A stretch of 64,000 nucleotides of DNA, taken from assembly GCF_006345805.1 (NCBI RefSeq), contig NC_042998.1:98332001-98396000 (forward strand), in the 5' to 3' direction. A program made the position numbers and the translations under genes. A model generated the notes under the pieces. It worked only from the letters and a program-made list of their open reading frames with translations, was not told the DNA's origin and searched no databases. Below, one piece after another: positions 3,291 to 61,879 of this stretch; position 1 is the first letter of the stretch; each line of letters starts with the position of its first letter. Source of the DNA: Octopus sinensis (taxonomy: Eukaryota).

Positions 3291-3417
3291 AGATTCTTTG
3301 AAAAGACAGATGTGTCAAAAGATGGTCAAGTTAACTTTGCTGAGTTTGTCCAATATGTTGCTGAACATGAGAAGAAACTGCGGCTGTTTTTCCGTAACAT
3401 CGATACAAATCAAGATG
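3291..3417 (+). CDS. SLC25A25: SCaMC mitochondrial ATP-Mg/Pi carrier, exon 2 (127 nt; EF-hand 2 and start of EF-hand 3)
   Basis: Acceptor ttttcatcag|, donor G|gtaagt. Translates RFFEKTDVSKDGQVNFAEFVQYVAEHEKKLRLFFRNIDTNQD-G with EF-hand loops. The symbol is the closest family label; invertebrates usually have one orthologue of SLC25A23/24/25. Confidence 0.95.
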
Positions 3418-6019
3418 GTAAGTGCTTAGTTATTCTTTTTGTTCTACACCATTTCTTGACTTTTGTTTAAATACCTCTTCTTCAGGAGCTCTGCAATGAG
3501 AAACAGCCATTTCTGTAGCAGTTCTTCTTTAGCCCTAAGTTAATCCTAATCAAACAGGCTTATGATCAAAGGTATTCCACCAAGACCGTCCTAACTTTTT
3601 ATGGAGCAACATATGATTTAATGTGTCATTTTTTTTTTTTTTAAGATGACAGGTTGTGATTCAAGGGAGATAGATCTAACTGCTATTTTAGTAGGTGAAG
3701 AGGCTGCATAGCCTCTCTTATTGGCTTATCTCTGAAGAAATTATTTCTAAAAATTGAATATGGTCAGATCAAATCATTAGTGAATATTTACTTGTACTTA
3801 ATGTTTGGAACATTTTATTGATCTAGACCTCAAATCATTCCTTAATCTTAATATATATATATATAATTTAGTACCAAATTGTAAATGAAAATTGTTGTAA
3901 AACATTAATTTATTGTGATATATTGTACTTCTGTTATGTCCCAAACTGTTACCTCATCACATTAAGCCATGTTATTATAATAATTTTGTGGAATATTTTC
4001 CAAACCCTCAACTACAAACTGTCATTTTAAGCAAAATTATCAGATATTTTGTTTTCCATACATAGACATAAGCCTTGGGTTTATAAGCCAGAGGTACAAA
4101 AGATTTGAATGTTTATGCATATCTCAGATTTAGATTTGAAACTATAGTAGTTTCAGGTATCTCAGTGTGCTTAGCATCACACCATGTTGCTTTTAGACAA
4201 CAAAATAATAGATAGCTAACAAAAAGTTGGCTCTTTATGTCATTTAACATTAGGAAGGTATATTGACATTATCAAATAAACACTGATGAAAATTACGAGC
4301 GGAATTAATTTCATTGAAGTTAAGATACCTATTTTATTACCTTCTGTTAGCAAAATGTAGGACTTAGAGAATGGTAGATGGAATTGATGCATTCATGTTC
4401 CAGGTTCAATCCCACTGCTTCATGCATTAAGCTAGTGTCTTTTACTATAGTCTTATGAGTGAAACTTGGCTGATAAAAACTAGAAATCTTTTGTGTATGT
4501 ATGTTTATGTATACCATGTCAGGTCACTCTTAGTGCCAATAATAGTAATATGTAACCAAGTACTACCTGTTACATAATCAGGCTGTTGAGAACTAACCCT
4601 GCCAAGAAGGCAAAGAGGGTGGTTTTCGTTGGATACCCTACAGCAATGCTTCTCAAACTATCTGATGTGGTGTACTGGCAGTTTTTTTTTCCAATGTGCC
4701 AGGTACTGATAATATTTCTTAGTAATATTAATTTATACCAGAAACAATATATATAATGAATATAATAAAAGTTGGCAATTTTTTTTTATCTTATGTTTAT
4801 TTTGTAAACAAATAATACAATATTAGATAAGCATTTTATAATGTTTCTTTCTTTTCTGGAAACTCGCCACTGACCAGTGCCAGTCTGTGGACCACCACTT
4901 TGAGTAGCACTGCCCTACAGGATGAAAAACAAAACCTATCAAAGAGCATATGAACTTAGTAGAGTTAACAACCATCTAACAGCTGGGAGTGAGAGACCCC
5001 TAATCTTTGTTTCAATATCTATCTAGGAAAAAGAAAACTCTGTAACATGTAATTTTGCATTCAACAGCAATATTGAATGTGTTTTAGTTTTCTTAAGTGA
5101 TAGAGTATATTTCTTATCTTTCTTTATACTTCACCTTCAATACTTCATTACTTTTTTTTTTTCCTCCACATTTTAAATAAAAATCTGTGTTATAATTACA
5201 TATTTTCTGACTGATATAGTAATATATTTGTGACAAACCAGCATCACTTTACTGACCAAACTGCTTATTATTTTTAAGTTTTTTTATTATTTTATTATTG
5301 AGTTCTGACTCTGGATAATGGGCGATACCATCTCAAAAATAAGTGTCCAATTATTTGTTTTACTTGCTATATCCTGCTTCAGCAAATTTGAGCTTGTTTA
5401 TCCAACAACGATATTGTGTAGTTGATGTCATAATAAAGTTTAACATTGCTGATAAGCTGTATTGTTTGCTTTCTAGCTTTATCTAAGAGAAAATATATAT
5501 ATAAATCCCTGTCTATCAAGTCAAAGTTGCTGAAAGTAATTGGAATGTAGATGTAACTACAGAAGACCAAAAATGACTTTTTGAAAGTACCTAGTTGGTA
5601 TGCACAAGAACTGGATATATAGTAAAATTATGCTGCACAGATGTGCTCAATCTGTTTGTATCGGAAAAATAAATCCTATTGTCACTGAATAGAGTTTTAT
5701 ATTCAATGAAAGGGTCGATTTTAGAGGTAAAAGAATTATCAGTTGATTTGTTTGTGGGTGAGATGTTTATTGTTACCATCATTTTTTGTGGTATTTTCCT
5801 GACCTAGAATACACGATATATGGAATTAAATAAGTTTTAGTTTGTGAATTGTATCCAGAGTGATCTTTTCTTGTTGCAACTACAGTGAAACAACCTTCCT
5901 TAAATATTAGAAAGTAATTAGTTTAATATATTAAAAATGAAAATGTTGAGGGGTGTTTTTCCGAACACCAAACTATACTTATGTAGGGGAGATAATTGCA
6001 TTTATTTCCCTTACTTTGA

Positions 6020-7286: not shown

Positions 7287-7374
7287 GAGCCATTGATGTG
7301 TCAGAAATCATCACATCCTTCAAAAATTTGGGATTACATGTGGATCAAGCCGAGGCTGAAAAGCTCCTGCAAAG
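7287..7374 (+). CDS. SLC25A25: SCaMC exon 3 (88 nt; EF-hand 3)
   Basis: Acceptor ccatttttaag|, donor AG|gttaga. Phase 1 in, phase 2 out. (G)AIDVSEIITSFKNLGLHVDQAEAEKLLQ(R) completes the loop DTNQDGAIDVSE. Confidence 0.95.
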
Positions 7375-9000
7375 GTTAGAATGTTTAAAGCTATACAGTG
7401 ATGGTAGTTATTCTTATGCTGACTATTCCAACAGTTTCTTTGCATCAGTGTTGTTATTTATTTCAGTTGAAACTCACTGGATGTTTCAAACCACTGTCTT
7501 ATAATACTTCTTTGCTTTCTATATATTATCATCTTTACAATATTAGATAAATCAAATTCTAGTTTAATTTCAAAACAAAACTTGGTTTATCATCTTCACT
7601 ATTTCATTTCTAAGTTCAGATCTTGCAAAGGCCAACTTTGCCTTTTATCCTTCAGTAGTCTGTGATAAAAATAAAAAATTTTTTTTCAAAGTCAAGTATC
7701 TGGGTTAATTTAATCAACTTTGTCTTTCCTCAATATTTACTTTTTTTGGTGGGTTGTGATTGTTAGTTAATGAAGCTTCACGTATGATAGTGAAAAAAAT
7801 GTGGTTTCATTGTATAAATTTTTAGCTTTATATTCATAATTCTTTTTTGCTTTTCTCCTCTAAACAATTAAATATAAAGCATCTAACTTCGAAAGAAAAA
7901 GACCAATGTCTGTTTGGTGTTCTTTTTTCCTGTATTTGCAATATGTTGGCTGGTCCTAAAAGCATAGACATTTGCACGCATTGTTGTGGCTATTTTTTTT
8001 TTTAGATACTAATCCCTTCAACTTTGAAAGTGATTCTTGTCTTTAGCTGAGTTAATTGAGGCATGTAAAGTTATATCTTAAGTCAGTGGACATCACACCT
8101 TCAGTTATCTTCAAGCTGTTTTTTCAGTTACCATTAGTTGTTATTTAGCTCCAGATCAGCCCTAACTGAGTAGATCTACAGCCGATGATGTTACAGCCAT
8201 AGCCAGGTTTTTTTTTTTTGACATTGTGTATTTAGGAGACATTATCAAATAAGTCTTTCCCCGCCTTTTTTTTTAAGATGGTCGCGTATGATTTGAAGGC
8301 AATTTGACTTTATTCTCCACAGCTCAAGTAACATAAATGCTTTCTTGTTGGGTTGTAGGTTATTTATTATTGTTACTGTTCAATCTGTTGATTATGTGAT
8401 GCCCAAAGTCTGCTGTTATCATTTGACGTTTCGTGGATTTTAAAGTTAGGACAAGTTTATCTGCAGGATCTGGTTCATCACTTTGGATTTGCTTGTGACA
8501 GCTCCATAGACAACCATTTTATTTGTTCCTATCTTCTTTATTGAAGAAAAGTTTCAATTACATTCATTTGTCCCATTGTGTTACTAGAATTTGACCATAA
8601 TTATTTTGTAATTTATAAAATATTTTTTCAGAAACCAAAGGTCAAAGTATATATTTTGCTGACATTTTTATGTTGTTAAAAAAGAAATGTAGAAGTGGTT
8701 GAAAACATGACATACTAATTTATATTTTTCTTTTTCTGAAACTTTTTTATTGGATTTTAACCTTTGAGCTATTATTCAATCACTGTAGCAGTTTATTATT
8801 GAGTTGATTAATCTAAACGCTTAAGTTTTAGGTTACCAATAGTTTCTCTAAACATTTGAAAAGGCTGCATGAAGATTGTTCTATTTTCTGAGTTTTAATG
8901 TTAAGATGACTGCATCAGAACAATATATGTGATTAGAATATAACTGATACTCTTGTTTGTTGCCCATTTTTAAACCATGTGAGTGTACCTTTTCTTCCAG

Positions 9001-9045
9001 AAATGAGACTTTTGATGCATCTTATAAATCACCATTGTGCTGGGG
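9001..9045 (+). CDS. SLC25A25: Candidate alternative cassette exon of SCaMC (45 nt, +15 aa between exons 3 and 4)
   Basis: Acceptor taccttttcttccag|, donor GG|gtaagg. Length is a multiple of 3, phase 2/2 matches intron 3, no stop: (R)NETFDASYKSPLCW(G). TGCATG at 8866 and 9071. No transcript evidence available. Confidence 0.6.
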
Positions 9046-9858
9046 GTAAGGTCGTGGCTTGTCAGCAATCTGCATGGAAATGTAGGTAAACTAAGATAGA
9101 TCGAGTGGTGTTTATGTGAAAAACCCAGGAATTAGATCCTTAGACAGCTTCTGTTAAGCTATTTGTGTTTGTGGTTTTGTAAATAGCTATTTACTCAGTT
9201 GTGTTGTCTTTTAGACTATTCTTTACCATCACATTTTAGGTGTGTGTTAAAGTTATAAACTTTGTGAAATTGACTAAATTAATTATGCTATTTTCAGATT
9301 AACATTAGAGATCTTTTTTAATAAATATAATTTATAATACTACATATTTAGTGAGCTGTTTTACCTAATAACCTCCTTTAAGAACTTAATTTTGTTTGAT
9401 CTCTAGTTTCCATTCCTTTTTACTATATTTCAAATAGTTAAGTATTTACAGCATGATAGTTGGGTAGTCATTGAAGTGGCTTTTTTATTTTATTTTTATG
9501 TTTTTTCATTTGAATCTGACTTCTGTATTATATAACAATTGTTTGAGATTCTTTATGCTAGAAGAAATGTCTTATTTTCATAAATGTTCTCAAAAGATTC
9601 TGTGGTACTAATGTAAATATTTAATGCTTAAAAATATAATTTTCAGCAGGCCTGTTTCTTTTTCGACTCAAGTTGGTACCTATGTCGACTATCACTTTAT
9701 ATTGAACATCAGTTAATTAATTCATAATACAGTTATTTAAATTTAATTAATATAGCTGATTTTCTTAAAGTGGACTGATACTAGCATTCATGTAAGTACT
9801 TAGTTACAATTTTTTTCTTGTCTTATAAGATTTAAATTTATAATGGATATATATATTA

Positions 9859-11258
9859 TCTAATAAGTAGGAAGGCAGACAAACCACAAATCCCATCAGG
9901 TAGATGGCCCTGCTCGCTCTGTAGAAAAGGCAGAAATTCTATAAGATGTACCCAGTGTAAGCTATGGACACTTAAGAGGTGCAACAGTATCAAAGGAAGG
10001 CCAACTGGGAAGATAGTTTTTGTATGTGGCTGATACTCAGGAGCAATAAACACTGAAAATGTGCAGAGAACAACTTCCACCACATTCCAGGGGGAAAAAC
10101 TAGAAGTAGTTGATAGCTTCCGTTACCTCGGTGACCAAGTCAGTAGCGGGGGTGGGTGCTCTGAAAGTGTAGCTGCTAGAATAAGAATAGCCTGGGCAAA
10201 GTTCAGAGAGCTCCTACCTCTGCTGGTGACAAAGGCCTCTCGCTCAGAGTAAAAGGTAGACTGTATGATGCATGTGTATGAACAGCCATGCTACATGGCA
10301 GTGAAACATGGGCCGTGACTACAAAGGCCATGTGTAAGCTTGCAAGGAGCGAAGCCAGTATGCTCCACTGGATGTGTAATGTCACTGTGCATATTTGACA
10401 GAGTGTAAGTGCCTTGAGAGAAAAGTTGGACCTAAGAAGCATCAGATGTGGTGTGCAAGAGAGACGACTGTGCTGGTATGGTCATGTGGTGAGAATGGAT
10501 GAGGGTAGCTGTGTGAAAAAGTGTCACACTGTAGTGGTTGAGGGAACCTGTGGAAGAGGTAGACCCAGGAAGACCTGGGATGAGGTTGTGAAGCACGACC
10601 ATTGAACATTAGGCCTCACTAAGGCAATGATTAGTGACTGAAACCTTTGGAAATATGCTGTGCTTAAGAAAACCCAGCAAGTCAAGTGAGACCATAACCC
10701 GTGGCCTATGCCAATGGTGTAACAAACCCACTTATGCGTACTTTTCCTTCATTGGGCACTAAATTCTGCTTGCGAAGACTTGTTGAAGCAAGTGAAATCG
10801 AAATCAAATTCGATGACAGCACACATAACTGGCATCCATGCTAGTGGAGTGCTAAGAGCACCATTTGAGTGTGATCGTTGCCAGGGCCGCTGACTAGCTC
10901 CCGTGCTGGTAAAAAGCATGTAAAAAGCACCATTTGAGCGTGATTGTTACCAGCGTCACCTTACTGGCACTTGTGCTGGTGGCATTTGAAAAGCAACATT
11001 CGAGTGAGGTTGTTGCCAGTGCTGCTAGACTGCCTCCTGTGCAGGTGGCACGTAAAAAACACCATTTGAGTGTGGCCATTGCCAGTGGCACGTAAAAGCA
11101 CCCACTATACTCTCAGTGTGATTGGCATTAGGAAGGGCATCCAGCTGTAGAAACTCTGCCAGGTCAGACTGGAGCCTGATGCAGCCATCTGGCTTGCCAG
11201 TCCTCAGTCAAACTGTCCAACCCATGCCAGCATGGAAAGTGGACGTTAAATGATGATG

Positions 11259-20305: not shown

Positions 20306-23300
20306 AAGGAAGTGCAGTGTGTAACTACATCCTGTAGTATGGTCAGTACAGTGATATTGTAATATATTACAAATACTGGTATAAAATATATTGCAGATAG
20401 CTTCTTGAATTTTTAAATTGTCTTATTTTATGAGACCACTGACTGTCAAGGTTCAGATTTTATATTTGGTGTTTAAGACAACTCCAGGTTTATGGATTTT
20501 TTTTAAAGGTTCAAATTCCATCTTACACACCATATATAATGTTTTCACTACAAAAGTCAATACTTCCAGATTTCTCTTGGATAAAAATTGTAAATAATCT
20601 TTTTCCCATACCCCTCTCAATGGATGATTATTAGTCCTATTTACTTGTGGACAGTGTTTTCTTCAAGTACGGGTGGAGGTGGAATTGTGTTCTGCACTGC
20701 AAATCATTGTATCACTTAGTTAAACAGCAGTGGTGTGAATTTTTAGGATACTTATTTTTGGTTATATGGGCTTGCTGGATAACAACTGTCTCACTTATGG
20801 GTCTATTGTAAGATCCTAATGGGATTTGAACCATTTATCCTCATGTTACCGAGCTATAGCATCAACTTAGCTAGTTGCAACACGATAATAGGAAAAACAA
20901 AACTGGGGTGGAAAAAAATATTCATCTTATTTTTAAAGAATTATAAATATAAGAATAAAAGTAGATGTTAAATAATAATAATCATTAACATTTTTTTTGT
21001 AAGAGATAAGGTGTGTTATATACTTTACTACTTTTATTTTGTATTATTTTATTTATTACCTTTTAAATTAATAGTCATTCTGATTAAGCAGTTCCACCCG
21101 TTCGGCATTCCGTCAGTAACTGCCACCCCTATCTCAATATTTCCACTGCCCAATAGATTTAATCAATATTTCTGGTTGTGGCGCAGTTGTTGTCTACTGT
21201 CCCATTTCTGATAATGTAGAGAAACATCACATCTCTCTCTCTGTCTGTCTCTCTCACACACATACACACACACATATACTTACATATATGTATATATTTC
21301 TCCCAGTTGCTTAGACAAGCCTGCATAATTCATGAAGCTTCTATCACATCTGCAGCAGTAGATTTATCTGTAAGTCTATTACAGCTGATTTTTCAGTATT
21401 ACTGTTGATATAATTGTATTAATTTGTAGTTATTTTTTTTGGTGTTATATTCATATCTTACCTTCTGTCATCTTTGAAAGTCAAGGAAATTACTATCGGT
21501 TTTTCTGCTGTACTTAAGTGTTTAAGCACTAATCTGCTACCAGCTGCTTGCATTTATGCACACCTATAATTCAGAAAATTACTTCCTGTCTCTAATCAAA
21601 TATCACACCTATGATAATATTCCCATGCTATCAATATACGTTTGAATTTTGCAGCACAAAATCAATTATTTGTTGTAATTTCAGGTAATAAACATTGCTC
21701 ATTCCTCATATTCATGGAACAAAAAAAAATATAATTTCTTCTGGTACTGCAGCAAAGACTCTACTGTTCGATATTTCATTGAATATAGAATACAGTTGTA
21801 AACATAAAAATATGGCTTTACTTTCTAAAGCTCATGCTTACGTACCATGTGTCTCCTCTCTCAGTTTCTCTCTTTCTCTTTCTGTCTATCAAACAGAAAC
21901 ACGTACATGCATCTTTAACTGTCTAACAAGGTGTTTGTATTCTCAGGTAGTTAAAATTTACATTTCTGTTGTTTTGCCACTATATACCTTGCCAATGTTT
22001 GACAAATTTTACATTTTTATTTTTAAATAACATCACACTATTTCTCCTTCATGTCATTAGCTTGTTGGTAAAGACTAATTAAAGTAAAGGTCATTGCTGC
22101 TTTCTTTCTCCAACAAAACTTTAGATATTAATATTGAATTCATTATTTGTTAGCCGTGAGAATAATGTGCACCTTCTCTCCAACTTAATTTCACCGTTGC
22201 ATCAAGTTATTTTTAATGTACATATTTTTTGTCTATTAAATTAATATCTGATAATTATTCTTAAATAAGCTTCAACATTAATTAGCAGTTTTCATCTTTA
22301 TTTTTTTTTGTTTTTTTTTGCTCTCTCTCTCTCTCTCTCTCAATACTTCTTTGGAAGAGAAAACTTGTGGAGTGAGTGAATCAGATTGACTTTCCTGTTC
22401 TATAAATTATCTAACCCTCTTAATATCAATATTTTGTACAAATGACTGCAGTATATTTTAAGTTGATTAATTCAAAATAGCCAGTCTGAACCAACATCAG
22501 CCTATGTTACTTTAACTGTTTATTGCTTTATTTTGTTATTGTTACTCAGTAAATAAAACAAATTAGTGTTAAGAACTGATATACCCAGTATTTTGTTGCT
22601 TTTTTTGTGTGTTTACTTTACTTAGTTGAGCAAAGTAAATCTCTGTGTACAACATTTTTTCCAACTGGTATGGTTTAATACAGATCTTTCTGGTCACATT
22701 TAGCACTCACCCAGATAGCAATAAGAGGGTTGGTTATGCTTGGTTACTTAATAAATTTTTTTTTATAATCATGCATGAGTGATGACCCAGGTATTTCACT
22801 GATATGCGTAAAAAAAAAAAAATTAAATCCACATCAAATTTTAAAATGACAATTCTTAATTTATCTGGTTGCTAAAGAAATTTATATCGAAAAATAATAT
22901 GAGTTACTAACTAGTGTAAGGCTTTTGCTGCACGTGTGTTGTGTATGTTGTGTACGTAGTAATTAATTATAAGACATGAAAACAGTTTATTGCAAAAATA
23001 AAAAAAACGTGGGTTTTTTTATGTGAGGTTGCCTCAGCTATTAAGTACTAGAATATGCTGTTTTAAGATTTGATTGAAAGGGTAAGAAATATGTTTTATT
23101 GATGCATATTTTCATTCATTTTTAGTTATTGAAGCTGCTACTACTGTTATGTTTTCTGTCTATGCTAAACACTGACCTTCCTATATCATGCTAGCTACAT
23201 GTCAATACTGTACAACTTGTTTTAGAAAATTCATTTGTTGATTATACTGTTGTTTATTGTATATCACTTCAAAATTGTCAAAGTTCTATTAATTTTTCAG

Positions 23301-29620: not shown

Positions 29621-32600
29621 GGTTATTTTAAATATTTCTTCCAATTAAGTAATGAACTGAGAGTGGGTTTGTACTTTGAACAAAGCCCAAGTTATATTTT
29701 TATGTAATCTTTTAACACAATTTTAGGTAGTGATGTTTTTATATTCAATTTTTAACTGTGTAATCCATGCTAGCTCTTCACTTTTTCCAATACAATCGTA
29801 AGTAGATTTATGTTTAGATTAACCTAATATCAAGTATGATTAGATTAGTGCTAGCTGGTGTCAGTATTTCTTTTAGCGTTTTTGTTTGTAATTATTGATT
29901 GAAATTTTTTTTTATGTATTTGCTCCTATTGCCACCCCCACCTTTACTCCCATTTAGTTCAATTAGTGATAGAAACAACTAATTGATCATATAGATTAGT
30001 GAGACAATGTGGTTTGTATAACTCTTAATAGGATTTCCTTCAGACTTGTGATGCAATTTATATGGATTTTCTTTTATATGTATATGAACTGACCATTTGG
30101 AGAGGTTAACCTTTTATTCCTTCATCACCTACATACACAACAGCATCAGAACAACCATCCCATTCCTTACAAATTTGAATGTTACATAATCAAGATTACA
30201 CCAGTGAGTCTTAGTTTACTTTTCAAGTTCAGAAATGTTTGTATATTTGAGACTGTGCACCTATATATAAACATGCTGGACAGTCACTATCATATTCACT
30301 CTGGATCTGTTTTTGTTTCCCCATGCACCAAGAAAAAGCTAGCTCACCCCTTAACTATCAACAATGTTGAATTTTTATAACAGTGTTCAGTCTGCTGAAA
30401 TTCACTTCTTCCACCTGGCTAAGATGACTCAAAAAGCTTTGGACACTGCCCTTATTTTTCAGAATTTATGTATAAAAAAAATTACTATAGGTCATCAATA
30501 ATATAATGTTGCTTAAAAAAAAAATGCTAGTTACCCTTCAGGTTATGTTATTGATCTCTGAACTACTAATCCAAAATTTCATTGAAATACTATTGTCAAA
30601 ATTATTTTTTCATTTAGTTTTTCACAGTTGCTTGTATTTTGCCACATATGTTACAATTATGCACTTACATTTATACATGCACACACACACATGTGGTAAC
30701 TATGTAATAAACTGTCTCATTTGTCATTGAGTTATTTGCACATCACATGAAGACAAAGGTTTTCATGTGATGTGCAAATAAGCTGTCAAACTGGTGAAAC
30801 ACCTTTTAATCCAAACTTTTGACTGGCTGATCTTACTTGTGTAAGTTAATTAGTTCTTAGAGATTGAAGTAGGTTCATAAGTCCCATTATGCTGCATTTC
30901 CATAACATACACTAGTGTATGCTCTCACTGAAATGCTCATCATCATTAATCAAAGAAATGCTTGTAGAAATAGCATGAACTCAGAAAAGAAAAGCATACA
31001 GTTTGATGGCAGTAACTCAGCATGACTTTGCAATCACTCAGAGATACATATACAAAGTATGAATGGAAGAGTGGCCTGTTTGGTTATGCCCAGTTAAACT
31101 AAAAACAATAAAGAATAACTTCAGTTCACCTTATTGAGAATGGCTCATAATCATGAGTGAAGTATTACCAAAAGAAAGAAAAAAAGAAGTTTGTAATAAA
31201 ACAGTTTAAAATTTTGAAGTAGGTTGTGTTTATAAGCAAGTTTCTGTATAGTGCAGAATGTGAACTGAAGATTAGTGCTTATTCTCAGGAACCAATATAG
31301 AAAACATCAATTGATTTAGCTTTATAAGGTTTTGAATTATTTTACCTTATCTTAACCATGTGATGATTTTAATTTTTGCTAGATGTAGTTAATCCATTGT
31401 CTATTTATTAGGTATTTGTCAGTACACATTTAATTAATTTCTTCTTGCAAAAATATCTTGATTACTACACCTGCTTTTATATTACCAATTTTAGTGTTTA
31501 GCATGTACTAACAGTTATATTCTTCATTGAATAATACAAATTTCCAGATGCTCCATTAGTGGAAGCTACTTCCAAATTTTATCTTTCTAATGAAAAGGAG
31601 CTAATAAATTTGTGCAAAGTAATACATATTTTAAGATTTCGCCTTCAATTACTAGAACATTGCACTAATGCCTGTATAGTTTTAAGCTTATTTTGCTATT
31701 ATTGTTTGAGATCTTATAAAATATTAAAAAATTGAGCCTTGATAATCGGCATCTTTATTCTCTATATTATTGTCACCAATATCATTGTTTCAGCAGGTTC
31801 TCAACTCTGTCATCATTATTCATAATCATCAGTTTATCAAATCTATCATGATTATCATTTAACAGTTTTCTCCATTCTTTCTTCTTTCACTTCATTTAGA
31901 CATTATCATTGGTCCTAGACTAATTGTAGACAGTGGGTGCTAATACTGTCAGGTGCAACCCAAAGTGACCACAGCACAATTGAAAAGCGAAATCTTATTA
32001 CATCTTTTGTGTACTGATTAGCTATGCAGTCTACTTTATCGGTTTCTACTTATTTCTTTCTTCTAAACAGAGGCCAACCTTCAGAAACAGATGTTTGTTT
32101 CTTTTTCTTTGTAAGTATACGGTCTTAGAGTAGTCTGAATCAGAATTTCAGTCCTCCCACTTTTGTTTTTACCCCCCCCCCCATTAGAACCAAAGATGGT
32201 TATTTTAGCAAAAAGAATTGTGTTATTGATTTCCTATCTTGACTCTACTTCATTGAGGAGGTCACCTTGTACCTATAAAAGACTATCAAGATTGTAAATA
32301 CCAAATCCTGAATTTGTTCTCGGCCAGTTTCAGTTTATCTAAATTATAGGTTTGGTTTCAGATTTAACCATGTAATTCATTACTGTATAAGGTATTTTCT
32401 TATTAACAAATTGATTTTTAGTTTTCATACTTGATATTACTCTTTAGTTACTGTACTATTTCAATTAAAATAAAAATAACTTGGTTGCTCTTTCTCTATT
32501 CTGTTAATGTCTGATTTCTATCTTATCAGATGTTAGACAATCCAAATTTTGCAATTGCGTCAGAAGTTACCTGTCAAGGTGGCTAGTGAAATCTACAATT

Positions 32601-33766: not shown

Positions 33767-34448
33767 ATGTAAACGCATCATTCATGTAAACTCAGAAATA
33801 TAGAATATTTTTTTCTACTCTAGACACAAGGCCTGAAATTTTTGGGGAGAGGGCCAGTCGATTAGATCAACTAATGGAGATCAGCAGCAAAAAAAGATTT
33901 TAAAAAACCCAGTTTCCAGAACATCATCATTTGTTCTTTGCATATATGCTAAAAATAAGTAAATCTCAGTGGAATCAGAAATGATCAATTTATGAAACAT
34001 TTGTGAGAATGAAAGCATTCCAACTGCTGTCATCCTGTCAGAAATTTTTCACTTTAGCTAGAATGAGTTTTCCAGCTGTTGCCATCCTATCTTTTTTTTA
34101 AAATTCAATATTCAACTCAAATAGATGCAATGAGTCGCAATTAATAAAACTGAATGCAATCTAAAGTAATAGATACAATTTATGAGAGAATCTTTCAGCA
34201 TACTTCTGTCATGCATAACAATGAATTTTTTATACCCTATTAATTTCATTATGACAAATAATGTCACTTGCTTATAAACTATGTGGAGGTGTAGAAGCAT
34301 GCGCTCATCACCACCATCATTATCATTATTATTTCAAGTCTGGCTTCCATGCCAGATGGTTCAACAGGATCTGACAAGCCAGATGACTGTGTTGAATGCT
34401 AATGTCTGGATAGCTGGTTGTCTTATAAACACCAACCACTTTACACCC

Positions 34449-34486
<38 letters not shown>

Positions 34487-35235
34487 TCATCGTTTATCGT
34501 ATGTTTTCCATGCTAGCATGGGTTGGACATAGACACATACACACACACACACATTTGTTTTGGTGTCACATGTCTTCATATGTTAGTATGGATTAGACAG
34601 CTACATATTAGTGTGGCATTGTTTTGCAGCTGGGTACATTTCCTGTCACTAACCCATCCTGTTTATCAACCAAGGTAGTTTTCACTCCTGTCTTCAAAAA
34701 TCAGTATTACCAGATAATCTGTTGACAAAAATATGTCAATTTTTCATGTGAAGCAAAGGATGCATACATTCATGCACATGAGCACTTGCACACACACTTT
34801 CTTGTGTGCATATATACATACATTTTATTCATGTCCATTTTTCTATTCTAGCATGAATTAGATGAATACATTATTGAGGCATTGCTTTACATTCAGACAT
34901 CCTTCCTGTGTATAATTCTTACTTGTTTTTCAAGTATTGAATCCCTTATTCCACACATTTTCAAAAGTACTAAGTCGGTGGATTATTTGTTGGCAGGAGT
35001 AATGTCAACATCACCACCTCCACTTGTAGCTTCTTTCAGTTTTTATCTATCGAATCCACTTACAGACCTTTGGTCAGCATGAGTCTAAAATAAGAGACAC
35101 TTTTCTCAGGTGCTGCACAGTGTTACTGAACCCAAAACCAGTTGGTTGCAAGTTGAACTTTTTAACCATATGGCCATGCCTATGTGTTGCATATGTGTAT
35201 GTACAAGTGAGTGTGTGTGTATCTATGTATGTGCA

Positions 35236-35734: not shown

Positions 35735-36880
35735 CTGGTGAGATAATTGCAGAAGTACTTAGCTGAAAGGAAGATGCTGTACTTAGCATTTGTCATTCTG
35801 GAGAGAGCCTTCAACAGGACCCTTCACTGTGTGATCTAGTAGTTGCTCATGATGCTAGGGTTAGACAAATGGCTTGTGAGAGCCATGTACAGAGGCACTA
35901 TCAGTAAGGCGAGTGTTAACAAGGACTGAGGAATTTAGTGTCCAAGTAAATTCATCAGGGCTTGATCCTTAGCTTAGGTTTCCATATCATAACAGAGGGG
36001 TATAAGACCAGTTGCCCATGGATACTGATGACCTTGTTCTTATAGCTGAATCTCCCATAGAATTAGAAAATAAAATTCCATATTTGGAAGCAAAACCTGG
36101 AATCAAAGGGTTTCAAAGTTAATTTAGCAAATAACAAAGTTTTAGTTAGTGGGGAAACAAGCAAGAGTCTGCGTCTATCAGGGAAATGGCTTTGTTCAGT
36201 TTGTAGAAAGAAAGTATCTAGAAATTCCACACATTGTACTTGATGCAAAATGGAAACATAACGGGTGCAGTAACATCATAGGCAGGTTCATAGAGAAAGT
36301 AGACTTTGTATGTGGCAGATATACAGGAACAATAAGCACTAATAATACATGGGAAATAGATTTTCGTGAATACCCAGGAGGATCCTTGGAAATAGTAGGT
36401 ACTTTCTGTTACCTAGGTATTGCTAAATTTGCAATGGAGGATGTTCTCAAAAGTATACTTTGTAGAATAAGAACAGGGTGGGAAAAGCTCAGAGAGCTAT
36501 TACCTCTGTTTGTAACAAAAAGGACTTTCTCTCAGAGTGAAAGGCAGATTGTATGATGCTTGTGTATGAACATCATTAATACATGGTAGTGAGACATGAA
36601 CCCTGAAAGTAGGGATATGCAGAAACTAGAAAGACATGGAGCTTGTATACTCTTTTGGATGTGCAACATTGGTGTGTGTGGGTGTACAACAAAGTGCAAA
36701 TATGATGAGAGAAAGTTGGGCATAAGAAGAATCATATGTGGTGTGCAAGAGAGAAGACTGTGCTGGTATGGACATGTGATTCATATTGATGAAGATAGCT
36801 GTATAAACAAGTGCTGATTACTTGTGAAAGAGGGAAATCCAGAAAGACATGGGACAAAGAGGAAATGACAATGGTCTGAG
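35735..36880 (+). mobile_element. Decayed RTE-clade LINE (RT domain)
   Basis: Remnants of the AFVDLEKAF, HQG..LS and DDLVLIAES..ELE..LESKG.KVN motifs, plus FCYLG, RIRTGWEKLRELL and RRLCWYGHV. Confidence 0.88.
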
Positions 36881-38368: not shown

Positions 38369-38480
38369 AATGGACAAGGATGGCACTTTAAAAATTGATT
38401 GGGACGAATGGCGTGAATATCTCCTTCTTCATCCAAGCCAGAATATCCACGACATTATTGCTTATTGGAGGCATTCTACA
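38369..38480 (+). CDS. SLC25A25: SCaMC exon 4 (112 nt; EF-hand 4)
   Basis: Acceptor tatttctttaag|, donor ACA|gtgagt. (R)[37 protein letters not shown]. Confidence 0.96.
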
Positions 38481-41889: not shown

Positions 41890-42876
41890 CTACCAGGACC
41901 TAAGATATATTCAGGTAGGTCGCCCTACTCGATCTGTAGAAAAGGTATAGGTAGAACTCCATAAGATGTACCCAGTGTAGGCTATAGACACATAAGAGGT
42001 GCAGCAGTATTAAAGGAAGGTTAACAGGGAAGATAGTTTTTGTGTGTGGAAGGTGCACATGTACAATAAACACCAAAAATGTACAGAAAATAGATTCCAT
42101 CACATGCCAGCAGGGAAAACTAGAAGTAGTTCATAGCTTCTATTACCTAGGTGATCAAATCAGTAACTGGGTTAGATGCTCTGAGAGTGTAGCTGCTAGA
42201 ATAAGAATAAGCTGGGTAAATTTCAGAGGGCTTCTACCTCTGCTGGTAACAAGGGCTCTCTTGCTCAGAATGAAAGGCAGACTGTGGAACATGGGCTGTG
42301 ACTGCTGAGGACATGCATAGGCTTCAAAGAAATGAAGCTAGTGTGCTCCACTGAATATGAGTGTCCTGAGAGAAAAGTTGCAGATATGAAGCATCAGATG
42401 TGGTGTGCAAGAGAGACGACAGTGCTGGTATGATCATGTGATGCATATGGATGAGGACAGCTGAGTGAGGAAGTGTCGCACTCTGATGGTAGAGAGAATC
42501 TGTGGAAGAAGTAAACTCAGGAAGACATGAGATGAGATGGTGAAGCACAATTTTCGAATGTTGGCCTCACAGAAGCAATGAGTGACCGAGACCTTTGGAG
42601 ATATGTTGTGCTTGAGAAAACCCGTCAAGCCAAATGTGATCGTAGTCCTGGCTGATGCTAGTGTTGTGTAGTTGGCCTGTTGAAAGCACCCTTCATTCAT
42701 TGGGCAATATGCTGTGCTTGTGAAGACCTGTCGATCCAAGTGAAATCGTAGTCATGGCTGATGCCAATGTCATCTAGCTTCTACCTGTGCAGTGGAGTGT
42801 AAAAAGCACTGTTCAAGTATTGGGCCTCATGGAGGTAGTGGTGTTGAACCAAGTGAGATTGTAGTTGTGGCTGATG
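41890..42876 (+). mobile_element. 5'-truncated RTE-clade LINE with repetitive 3'UTR
   Basis: Same ORF pieces as 9859-10620 (RCTQCR..THKRCS, LEVVHSFYYLG, RIRISWVNFR). The 3'UTR repeats aagtgagatcgtagtc.tggctgatg. Confidence 0.9.
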
Positions 42877-42930: not shown

Positions 42931-43835
42931 GATAAACTTGCAGAAGATAAGCACTCAGTAACATTAGTGCTTACTGTTCACTATTTAATTTCCTTAGCTA
43001 TTTCACTATTTCTATTTTAGTAATTAATACAGGTGTTAGAAAACTTGTTAATTATGCCTGCTATTTTAAATTCTGATCAAAAGTAATAAATCTCATCTGA
43101 TAATTGTGACAGTGCCCTCATTAATATTGTATTCCCCTAAATACATGTGATGCTTAAAATGAGGGGACACTTAGAATGTTATCTGCTTTCTAAAGCAGTT
43201 TTATTAATTGGAATAAATTGAAAAAAATGTGTGATAAGGAAAAGGGAAAGTTTTCTAGACAGATAACTTACTGACATTTAAGAAACAGACTTTGAAACTT
43301 CTCTTAAATGAAGCAAGATAATGTCTGCCAGTTCAATTCTCTTGTTTTGCCACACAGAAAATTTAAGTTGCAATTTCATAAAATTCTGTATTTTTGTAAA
43401 TGTTTAATTTATTCATCTTTTATCTGTACATATAATCCTTAAAAAAAAATTTTTTTTAATGGTTGTGCAATAAGCCAATGATATAACTATTAAAATATTC
43501 CATTACATGTTCATGACGTAACTGTTAGTCATAGCTAATTCTGTGTTATCTTCAAAATCTCATTCACATATGAGCATGTGAGAAGAGAGCATATGTAGTA
43601 TATAGGACATACTATTATACCGGCTACAGGCCTTCGGTTTTTTACAGCTGATATGCTATCACTCTCTGTTACTACCTGATTGTTTTATGTACCTTTCTTT
43701 TTTATACTTCCACTAAACAGTGCTATTTGGTCAAATTGAAATATGCTAACACTTTTTCTTGTCCCTCAACACATGCTATTTGCCAAGATTGACCCTTTGA
43801 ACATTTTTGAATACTGTCCATCACTCTCTATCCAG

Positions 43836-44171: not shown

Positions 44172-44453
<282 letters not shown>

Positions 44454-52500: not shown

Positions 52501-55500
52501 TTAGGACTTTTTGAATATTTAGTTCAAATCTTGTCTAACTGATGAGGTAATATAATATATAAGGTAATATTACATATAGTATTAAAGGCTTTGGGATTCT
52601 CTGATTTTGAATGTAAATCAGCAATTAAGTTTTTCAGTGGCATTAACTGGATAGAATTTACAATAATATTTTTGTAACAGTTGAAAAATTGTGTGCACGC
52701 ACACGCATATACACACCCCTTCTCAAAGAATAACTTTCAGTTGTTACAAAAATACAATTGTAAATTCCATCTAGTTTATGCATTTGACTGTGCATATATA
52801 TCTATATATGTGTAATGGTGATGTAATATCTATATATCTAATATGATTATGAAAGCGTTGTAAATGTATGGAATAAATACCTATTTTCTCATCTCTTATC
52901 TGTTCGGTGTGTGTGTATGAATGTACACTCACACACACACGAAATACTTTGGAATGCAATAGCAAAATTGTAGTTAAGTGAACATTTTTTACTAATCTAA
53001 ATTACCATATTAAATTATTTTGACATGTTTTTAATAAAATAATACTTAAAAGAAAATACCACTCAATGTCAGGAAATATTAACATTAAAAGAACCAATAA
53101 AAACATAGTGTTAATAATTTCTTTATTCATTATTTAAAAATTGGAAGAGTACTTATATATATATCCATTACTGAACTTATATATATATATATATAGATAT
53201 CCTATTTTATAAGATTTTGCAGTGCAGTCTAAATAACCCCACATTATCTGCACAACTTTTCTACTTCTGTTCCTATTAATTTACTGGTTACTGTTGCCTT
53301 GGTTTACCATTCTTCACTGTTCTCTTTTACTTTTCTAATTATTTTTCTGTTGTCACTTATACAAAGGATTGCTTTTGCTTTTTTTTTTTTATAAACAAAA
53401 AAGGACTTGGAAACTTTCACTGTTGTAAACTTTTTCAGAAATATTGGCTACAAACAAGCTTCCTGCTTGCTGCATCATGGATGATGGTCTGACAAAATCA
53501 CCTGCACTCCTTATAAGTCAAAATCCTGCTACTTACAAGGAACAGGTACGCCCTGTAAGGAGTGTTTTGGTCTCAAATGTAGGGCATGCTAAATTAGTTG
53601 TTTTGTTTCAATTTTTTTTTATTATATATTTTCTAGACTACTAAGTAACTTGCTATTTTATATTTGAATATACTATTGTGAATGATTCTTTCCTTATTGA
53701 CAATAGTTCAAACCAATATCAACTCTTGTTGCTTCTGATTAAATGCTGTTATTATGATCCACTTCAGTGTTTATTTCGTGTGAGTCATGTCTGGTTTGCA
53801 TTACTATTCAAAATACATCAGTATTTTTTTATCAATCATTTATGGGGAAAATGGACACTATAAAAATATCCATGATTTTTAGGTATATAAGTGCATAGAC
53901 TATATCTGCTTTTGAATTTTGTGTTTAAAATGTTGCTGCAGACAACTAACTCTTTTTAGTTGTCTGCTTTTAAAATATAGTCCTTAAGCTATGTTTTACA
54001 ATTTGCTTTGTTTGTATTTATTTTTTTCTCCTTATCTCTCAATTCATCATATATCTAGTAATCTGATTAGTTTTTTTTTTCTTCATACCAATTACATATG
54101 CTATCAACAAAGTGACCCAGGTTATATACTTTGGGAGCATTCTGCATACTAAATACAAATGTGATAAGGTCTTGTGTATGTAATATGAGTTAAAAGCATT
54201 CAATCAACTGAAGTTATCCAAACACTTGCACAAAATGCCCTTCTAGACATGTTTAAAATAATTATTTTAAAAAAGTGATCAGCTGATCAAAATTCATGGA
54301 CAATACTTGACAAGGGAGATTACTCTATTCTGCACTCTTTAACTTGGTCCAAAATACTCCATTGACTGATCTTATTGACGTTCTCTTATTTTAGACTTTG
54401 ATCATTCCTGGAGGGAGTTTTGTCCACTAATTGTTTGGATAGCCAAATTACACTTCTGTGTTAACAAGATTTTAATATGCAAGATCTTTGCTTTCACTGT
54501 ATATTGATAAATTTTAGGCAAACTTGTGAATTCATTTTAATACATACATTGGTTGGCGAGCATTTAAAACATTTTGGAAATCTACAGCTTAATTATTTAG
54601 TTAATTAATATTCAGTAATCATCTTTTTTGCAATGCTTCTAAACTGAGATAGTGGCCTAATTTGAAATGCTATAGAAACATTAAAAGGAAAAGCTTCTGT
54701 AAAGAAAATGTAGGAAAATATTTTATCTTTTTAAAATTTCATTTATTAAATTAATCTTCTCCATCGTTAACCACCATAGTTTCATGTTATTCACATTTAC
54801 ATGGATGGTCATTTTTTTCCCCCTGTTAATATTCTGTTTTTAAATCTGAGTGGTTCTTGGCATATATTTTTCTTTACTCTTATTTGTAAAAGCTGGTTTA
54901 TGATATAAATTTCTCGTAACTCCTGTGAAGAATATGATAACTAAAAATTATGCATCACACTCTAGAAATATAACTTATACATTTTACAGAATATATGTTC
55001 TATATTAGCTGTTTTCTATTTTCTTTTTGACTTCACTTCAGAGGGGTGGTTGAAATAGGTTTTTTAATAACTATAGTAGCACATTATCAACTATAGCTGC
55101 TGCTATCTGTTGATACACTCAATGCATATATTCACCTAAATTAAAGGCATTTGTTATGGATTCATTGAAAAAATTTTGATGTTTCTCAATACAAGAAAAT
55201 GTTGATAGAAATTGCATTTAAAATTAAAATACTTATACTGCTATTGTTTTGTTCTCGATTTAGAAAAAATATTTATTTATTTATTTTACTTTCAACACAG
55301 ATTTTGTTATATCATTAGTGTCCTAAGTTTTGACATTTTGTCTTCATGGCAAAAAGCAAATTTGAAACCATTTTCACTGGTCAAAGCCCATGACCACATG
55401 TGAGATCAGTGTAATCAATTACTGCTTTTAAAGTGGAGTTTAGTTCAGTGCTGCAAGCCAACAAATGTTTTATTATATTGCTGCTTACAATAGTAAATTG

Positions 55501-57161: not shown

Positions 57162-57269
57162 ATCAAATCTCTTTTCAAAAAAGACAAACATGAACTTGGA
57201 ATGGCAGAGAGATTTATTTCTGGGTCATTAGCTGGTGCTATCTCACAAACTATTATTTACCCCATGGAA
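57162..57269 (+). CDS. SLC25A25: SCaMC exon 7 (108 nt)
   Basis: Acceptor tttaattacag|, donor GAA|gtaagt. [36 protein letters not shown]. Confidence 0.96.
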
Positions 57270-58795: not shown

Positions 58796-58963
58796 GTACT
58801 GAAAACAAGATTAGCTGTTCGAAAAACTGGACAATACAAGGGTATTTTTGATTGCGCAAAACAACTCTTCGGAATTGAAGGTGTTTCTTGCTTCTATAAA
58901 GGCTACATTCCAAACTTAATAGGAATTCTTCCATATGCTGGAATTGATCTTTGTGTATATGAG
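58796..58963 (+). CDS. SLC25A25: SCaMC exon 8 (168 nt)
   Basis: Acceptor tatatttcag|, donor GAG|gtaaat. [56 protein letters not shown]. Confidence 0.97.
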
Positions 58964-60243: not shown

Positions 60244-60391
60244 ACATTGAAGTCAATGTATCTTGCCAGAAGCAAAAGCAAACAAGATCCAAGCATTTTT
60301 GTGATATTGACCTGTGGTACGATAAGCAGCACTTGTGGCCAACTAACAAGTTATCCTCTAGCTCTGGTCCGAACTAGACTCCAGGCTCATG
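60244..60391 (+). CDS. SLC25A25: SCaMC exon 9 (148 nt)
   Basis: Acceptor ctctttttcag|, donor G|gtatta. TLKSMYLARSKSKQDPSIFVILTCGTISSTCGQLTSYPLALVRTRLQAH-G, with the SCaMC-typical third signature PLALVR. Confidence 0.96.
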
Positions 60392-61709: not shown

Positions 61710-61879
61710 GAGCTTCTCACACAATGACCAGCATGTTCAAAGACATTTTAAGGAAGGATGGTTTCAGAGGACTTTATCGAGGTCTTACTCCAAATTTTAT
61801 GAAAGTGGCACCAGCAGTTAGCATAAGCTATGTAGTATATGAACATACTCGGACTGCATTAGGAGTATCTTCAACTTAA
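61710..61879 (+). CDS. SLC25A25: SCaMC exon 10, coding part to TAA stop
   Basis: Acceptor ttttcttgctcag|. (G)[55 protein letters not shown]. Absent from the ORF track but in frame with exon 9. Confidence 0.96.

Follow-up and report, generated by a model that had tools for sequence, protein, structure and literature searches.

The window, a stretch of 64,000 nucleotides that is 100% identical to Octopus sinensis chromosome CM016860.1 (the contig encoding XP_036354467.1), carries on its + strand exons 2-10 of a calcium-binding mitochondrial carrier gene of the SCaMC/APC (ATP-Mg/Pi carrier, SLC25A23/24/25) family. Through the ATP-Mg/Pi carrier, cytosolic calcium determines how large a pool of adenine nucleotides the mitochondria maintain. 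Exon 1 lies ~23.6 kb upstream of the window, and exons 2-10, when joined, give an open product of 406 aa. The exons within the window are:

3291-3417, + strand: exon 2 of the SCaMC gene
7287-7374, + strand: constitutive exon 3, encoding the last part of EF-hand 3 together with the EF-hand 4 entering helix; ends ...AEKLLQ plus AG, phase 2
38369-38480, + strand: constitutive exon 4, encoding the calcium-binding loop and exiting helix of EF-hand 4 and the first part of the amphipathic linker helix
43836-43994, + strand: exon 5 of the SCaMC gene, constitutive
44181-44321, + strand: exon 6 of the SCaMC gene
57162-57269, + strand: exon 7 of the SCaMC gene
58796-58963, + strand: exon 8 of the SCaMC gene
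60244-60391, + strand: exon 9 of the SCaMC gene
61710-61879, + strand: exon 10 of the SCaMC gene

The best database matches to the 406-aa product were octopod proteins named SCaMC-2, with EF-hand and PF00153 domains, and its N-terminal domain aligned with the regulatory domain of human SCaMC-1 (4N5X) at E = 1.5e-43. Judged from its sequence, the product has the four EF-hands, the amphipathic linker helix and the three Mito_carr repeats by which SCaMC/APC ATP-Mg/Pi carriers are recognised, and we assign the gene to that group. Exon 3, which matches the annotated octopus SCaMC proteins, shares 95.6% identity with its counterpart in Argonauta, and exon 4 shares 91.8%.

Within intron 3, ~1.6 kb past exon 3 in Octopus, lies a short segment that had been predicted from the sequence to be an in-frame cassette exon. 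The segment and the elements around it are:

8866-8871, + strand: second TGCATG, 130 nt upstream of the exon
8947-9263, + strand: conserved island comprising the cassette and its flanks; 337-column alignment with Argonauta, 73.6% identity, 188 bits
8981-9000, + strand: polypyrimidine tract and 3' splice site gtgtaccttttcttccag; weight-matrix score 3.49
9001-9045, + strand: alternative 45-nt cassette exon ('exon 3a'), encoding NETFDASYKSPLCWG; in RefSeq isoform X1, skipped in X2
9046-9110, + strand: 5' splice site and conserved intronic block; positions +1 to +33 identical with Argonauta at 32/33 (97%), the next 32 nt at 81%
9071-9076, + strand: TGCATG, an RBFOX-type consensus site, 25 nt past the exon end; invariant in O. 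bimaculoides and Argonauta (three octopods)
9163-9213, + strand: T/G-rich runs downstream of the exon; partly conserved, ~65% identity with Argonauta

Direct reading of the DNA bore out the original prediction on the splice sites, the 45-nt length, the phase and the absence of a stop. The acceptor reads ...gtaccttttcttccag followed by A, the first exon base, at 9001; the last cassette bases, up to 9045, are ...TGGGG, and gtaagg occupies 9046-9051. Exon 3 closes with two codon bases (AG) and exon 4 opens with one (A), and the cassette preserves this phase of intron 3, with a spliced translation that runs EKLLQR-NETFDASYKSPLCWG-MDKDG without a stop. The segment combines, as expected of a cassette exon, consensus 3' and 5' splice sites, a frame-preserving length and an open frame. 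The predicted position of the insert at the start of the EF-hand 4 loop also held, as alignment to the human SCaMC-1 structures 4N5X and 4ZCU places the 15 additional amino acids two residues ahead of the first Asp of that loop.

The exon had been described as hidden, which it is not, as public RefSeq annotation already contains it as isoform X1. XP_036354467.1 (O. sinensis SCaMC-2 isoform X1, 477 aa) has exactly NETFDASYKSPLCWG between EKLLQR and MDKDG, and XP_029654787.1 (isoform X2, 462 aa) lacks the cassette peptide; both RefSeq products were retrieved from the 90%-identity cluster of the best protein match. The predicted exon and its exact 15-residue peptide therefore exist in RefSeq: the X1 insert, an automated model on the same contig as the window, does not differ from the prediction in any residue. 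Because the isoform is already in RefSeq, the exon does not count as a discovery of the genome scan.

Inclusion and skipping products are thus both annotated in O. sinensis, at the level of gene models. The annotations of O. bimaculoides, O. vulgaris and Argonauta contain skipping products only, so that one of the four cephalopod annotations has the inclusion form; inclusion may therefore be rare or tissue-restricted, its support consisting of one automated gene model together with conservation. Searches of protein fragments assembled from sequencing runs gave, for an 82-aa query, one unrelated snail fragment and none with the cassette; for a 181-aa decapod-based query they yielded no N-terminal model from a cephalopod and, again, no cassette. 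Literature searches that were not aimed directly at isoform X1 yielded no paper on it.

Among the O. vulgaris products, CAI9718017.1 (334 aa) starts at MDKDG, corresponding to position 38370 of the window onward, and is without EF-hands 1-3. Its start at exon 4 implies that transcription begins at an alternative site, either inside intron 3 (31 kb) or beyond it. Short human SLC25A25 transcripts are comparable, in that they start at the constant exon preceding the optional exon (PMC6468709).

The strength of the splice sites was scored with a crude position weight matrix built from approximate metazoan consensus frequencies. On this scale the cassette acceptor (3.49) falls within the range of the nine real acceptors of the gene (-3.4 to 10.5, median about 3.4), and the cassette donor, at 6.16, scores above all eight real donors. 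Across the 30,994 nt of intron 3, 42 acceptors and 4 donors match or exceed the scores of the cassette sites, and the cassette is the only acceptor-donor pair of such quality with a spacing of 9-300 nt. Dinucleotide shuffles of the intron (n = 200) yielded such a pair in 72% of cases and a pair that was also in frame and open in 5%, the pair thresholds having been chosen after the candidate had been seen. At p about 0.05, the sequence statistics taken alone are suggestive, not decisive: they make the cassette a reasonable suspect, not a proven exon. We dropped them as proof, in view of the 5% of equally good shuffles and the post hoc thresholds. The status of the exon is instead settled by annotation and conservation.

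Orthologous loci were compared in O. bimaculoides and Argonauta hians. The former says little, because identity is about 94% across the whole region; its exon is intact with a single change, K to I, and the 3' splice-site segment 8981-9000 is identical at 20/20 positions. With Argonauta, no more than about 2% of intron 3 is alignable. The island at 8947-9263 is the top non-exon match in the intron, of which it makes up ~1%, and the remaining collinear islands score at most 87 bits. Conservation in related species, on which the prediction had been staked, was found here: A. hians keeps the exon in frame, with its two splice sites and the TGCATG past the donor. The orthologous exon has 42 nt (AAATGGTACTTTCGAAGCATATTATTCACCGTTGTGCTGGGG, encoding NGTFEAYYSPLCWG) and lies ~1.2 kb past exon 3, in frame when joined to Argonauta exons 3 and 4. 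It differs from the Octopus exon by the in-frame deletion of one whole codon (3 nt) and by changes that include the synonymous TTT>TTC and CCA>CCG. The acceptor segment is identical to 8981-9000 at 17/20 positions with TTTTCTTCCAG invariant, the donor GTAAGG is intact, and SPLCWG, the C-terminal part of the insert, is invariant among the octopods. The retained frame, splice sites and SPLCWG show coding-type constraint on the predicted exon since the octopus-argonaut divergence, and it is this conservation in Argonauta that we regard as decisive for a genuine exon.

These data also bear on whether the segment could be a non-functional pseudo-exon, that is, a chance pair of splice sites used occasionally as splicing noise and picked up by automated annotation. 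The 5% of shuffled introns that give an equally good in-frame open pair would fit such an origin, as would the presence of the inclusion isoform in only one of four cephalopod annotations and the failure to find an assembled transcript fragment with the cassette. However, a chance pair would not be expected to keep its splice sites and frame in Argonauta, where the differences amount to a one-codon indel and synonymous changes, nor to sit in a nearly invariant flanking intron and coincide with the strongest conserved island, ~1% of the intron. We consider a pseudo-exon extremely unlikely.

A second possibility concerns the conserved block as a whole, which might act primarily as an enhancer within the intron, or supply the 3' end of an alternative first exon that uses the donor at 9046 only and gives an N-terminally truncated product from MDKDG. 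However, the acceptor TTTTCTTCCAG is invariant, the reading frame survives a 3-nt deletion, the RefSeq model treats the segment as an internal coding exon, and the conserved block starts only about 54 nt upstream of the acceptor. Set against this are the annotated 334-aa product of O. vulgaris, which begins exactly at exon 4, the higher conservation of the intron past the donor than of the exon, and the existence of other conserved non-coding islands in the gene. On balance, an enhancer or first exon in place of an internal cassette is very unlikely.

An exonised transposon was also considered; the cassette region is single copy in the 89-kb locus and is not an obvious one. A scan of the window against Rfam gave no match, which means that the conserved block belongs to none of the known RNA families. 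In the decapod Acanthosepion pharaonis, the gene model starts at exon 4 and the 10 kb upstream that were examined contain neither exon 3 nor the cassette, so that this species is not informative on absence.

Several other parts of the locus are conserved or repetitive. In intron 6, positions 53245-54025 form a single-copy block that aligns with the Argonauta locus (33769-34580) over 849 columns at 76% identity with 105 gap positions; it exceeds every exon of the gene in length, shares no long ORF and has the appearance of a conserved non-coding element. Just upstream of exon 5, some 310 nt of intron (43525-43835) are conserved with Argonauta within a 509-column match of 75% identity and could be a splicing-regulatory region or another optional segment. 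Small islands collinear with Argonauta occur in introns 2 and 3 at 5981-6019, 21256-21400, 29837-30097 and 32224-32270. Introns 3 and 4 also contain three related ORF fragments on the + strand (9836-10602, 36146-36814 and 41988-42305), the first of them ~800 nt past the cassette, whose peptides (...CSESVAARIRI.W.KFRELLPLLVTK..., ...RRLCWYGHV...) look retroelement-derived.

Regarding regulation, both copies of TGCATG named in the original prediction, at 9071-9076 (25 nt downstream) and at 8866, are present, and the UG-rich runs that it put at ~9160-9210 were read at about 9163-9213. On its + strand the window has 15 copies of TGCATG, about one per 4.3 kb. The copy at 8866-8871 is present in O. 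bimaculoides and lies outside the block alignable with Argonauta; its significance is doubtful. The downstream copy is a conserved (U)GCAUG in the proximal downstream intron, as is characteristic of RBFOX-regulated exons. When bound downstream, RBFOX favours inclusion in the tissues that express it, typically nerve and muscle. The exon itself is 80% identical with Argonauta, below the 97% of the flanking positions +1 to +33, and a flanking intron that is better conserved than the exon, with UGCAUG just downstream, is a classic mark of a regulated alternative exon. The octopus cassette is alike to RBFOX-regulated exons in being short and frame-preserving, in having more conservation in the intron than in the exon and in having UGCAUG within 30 nt downstream. 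The conserved hexamer suggests that inclusion is probably promoted by an RBFOX-type factor acting at the downstream UGCAUG. Our search of the literature on RBFOX, microexons and SLC25A25 found no paper linking an SLC25A25 exon to RBFOX.

Optional exons at the same place in the protein occur in other animals. In human, mouse and chicken, SLC25A25 has an optional 36-nt exon, the 'second conserved segment' of Calabrese et al. 2019 (PMC6468709, Sup-Table 16), and this supernumerary exon comes after two constant exons that follow alternative first exons (PMC6468709). In human it reads AATACGAACGGGCCATTTCTGGGGCCCTGTCACCTA between AG and GTAAGT (PMC6468709). Situated after the third coding exon and before the one that follows, the human exon translates in phase 2 as (R)IRTGHFWGPVT(Y). 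A 12-aa insertion at the exon 3/4 junction of human SLC25A25, which the original prediction had put forward, is thereby confirmed by the published sequence (PMC6468709). The vertebrate exon resembles that of the octopus in being short, frame-preserving and optional, in following the third coding exon just before EF-hand 4, and in its phase, its conserved AG/GT bounds and the W-G in its peptide; it has been kept from chicken to human. The vertebrate insert has 12 residues compared to 15 in the octopus, and the two have no significant similarity (p = 0.2).

Cassettes at the same junction and in the same phase as in the octopus were also found in amphioxus and sea urchins, with isoforms annotated both with and without them. 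The amphioxus cassette has 63 nt (FTLRLRTFLAQGTSVFGACRC) and is identical in two species (Branchiostoma belcheri/floridae, isoforms X1/X3). That of sea urchins has 78 nt, is Cys/His-rich and is conserved from Diadema to Strongylocentrotus (S. purpuratus, Lytechinus, Diadema setosum). These lengths of 63 and 78 nt differ from that in the octopus, and the peptides are unrelated to it. In B. belcheri (8678-8740 and 8070-8132 of two sequences examined), one TGCATG precedes the acceptor by 18 nt and another follows the donor at a distance of 41-49 nt, and the Lytechinus cassette has no TGCATG within 300 nt downstream. We also observed that the spacing in the sea-urchin peptide (KGCKGCRDH.P.H...HG..ECVCY; Lytechinus locus 8029-8106) recalls a metal-binding or disulfide motif, which is unusual within an EF-hand domain. 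Further isoform differences in these genes are an extra 30 aa between exons 8 and 9 in amphioxus isoform X1 and a 26-aa insert at the exon 4/5 junction in Lytechinus isoform X1.

Among other molluscs, intron 3 is 156 nt long in Haliotis, 1,044 nt in Pinctada and 547 nt in Solemya, and in none of the three does it contain an in-frame open pseudo-exon. In Argonauta the same intron measures 11.5 kb and in Octopus 31-33 kb, which illustrates how greatly introns have expanded in octopods.

The original prediction had proposed a splicing switch that is either ancient or convergent, and the comparison leans towards the convergent alternative; the ancient one fares poorly, with unrelated peptides and mollusc introns that lack the exon. 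Smith-Waterman scores of the insert peptides against shuffles gave p = 0.2 when octopus was paired with human and 0.4-0.87 in the remaining pairings, and homology of the inserts between phyla was accordingly rejected as unsupported (shuffle p 0.2-0.87). What the lineages do share is the position and phase of the intron, without detectable similarity of the exons, and the intervening lineages have either unrelated cassettes (amphioxus, echinoids) or none (Haliotis, Pinctada, Solemya).

A single exon of the bilaterian ancestor, homologous to the cassettes of vertebrates, amphioxus and sea urchins but missing from gastropods and bivalves through loss, would account for the use of the same intron and phase in four lineages, for the strong conservation of each cassette inside its own lineage and for the downstream TGCATG of both octopods and amphioxus. 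Yet no significant similarity of the peptides was seen across phyla (p 0.2-0.87), and a common origin sits uneasily with lengths of 36, 42-45, 63 and 78 nt, with the introns of Haliotis, Pinctada and Solemya, which lack an in-frame open pseudo-exon, and with the absence of TGCATG within 300 nt downstream in Lytechinus. Moreover, other introns of these genes have also acquired lineage-specific optional segments. We consider such an ancestral exon possible but unlikely. The fuller scenario, in which an RBFOX-controlled bilaterian switch was kept in vertebrates, amphioxus, echinoids and octopods, with losses in gastropods and bivalves where the intron became short, seems to us more doubtful still; if true, the switch would be one of the few alternative exons common to cephalopods and vertebrates. 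Given the unrelated peptides, the differing lengths, the short exon-free introns in other molluscs and the lineage-specific segments elsewhere, the cassettes probably arose by independent exonisation at a structurally permissive site. Optional exons of this kind have already been described for vertebrate SLC25A25; their recurrence across phyla and the conserved UGCAUG may be new.

To consider what the insert might do, both octopus isoforms were modelled with AlphaFold2 from the same 27-sequence alignment. In the X1 model the helix ends at residue 126 and residues 128-149 form a loop with pLDDT below 50; the 10-residue blocks of 121-150 have mean pLDDT values of 28-48 in X1, compared to 60-67 for residues 121-150 of X2. 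The mean pLDDT of the models is modest (68 and 72). They offer weak evidence that the insert is an unstructured loop, with lower confidence for EF-hand 4 in X1. It is also conceivable, if speculative, that the Leu of SPLCWG sits, relative to the loop, where the skipped form has a Leu.

We propose the following mechanism. An RBFOX-type factor would bind the UGCAUG downstream of the cassette and promote its inclusion, and the long isoform would be enriched where the factor is expressed. Inclusion would place the 15 residues between the entering helix (...AEAEKLLQR) and the calcium loop of EF-hand 4, in the N-terminal regulatory domain. Most likely, the insert would change the calcium affinity or the coupling of the EF-hand 3-4 lobe and thereby shift the calcium threshold for adenine-nucleotide transport. 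In the human carrier, calcium binding is coupled to the carrier domain through an amphipathic helix gripped by this lobe (PMC6283063), and for this reason an altered calcium threshold or coupling seems the likeliest consequence. RBFOX control and altered calcium sensing are each plausible on these grounds. Overall, we estimate a probability of about 0.82 that 9001-9045 is a genuine alternatively spliced coding cassette of the O. sinensis SCaMC gene, with the proposed RBFOX and calcium-tuning mechanism.

Among the papers searched, we found no functional study of any such insert. The occurrence of a conserved optional exon at the entry of EF-hand 4 in at least four lineages (vertebrates, amphioxus, sea urchins and octopods) points to a recurrent route to an alternative carrier form whose calcium sensing is changed, for which the octopus exon, with its invariant downstream UGCAUG, provides a clean and cheap test case.
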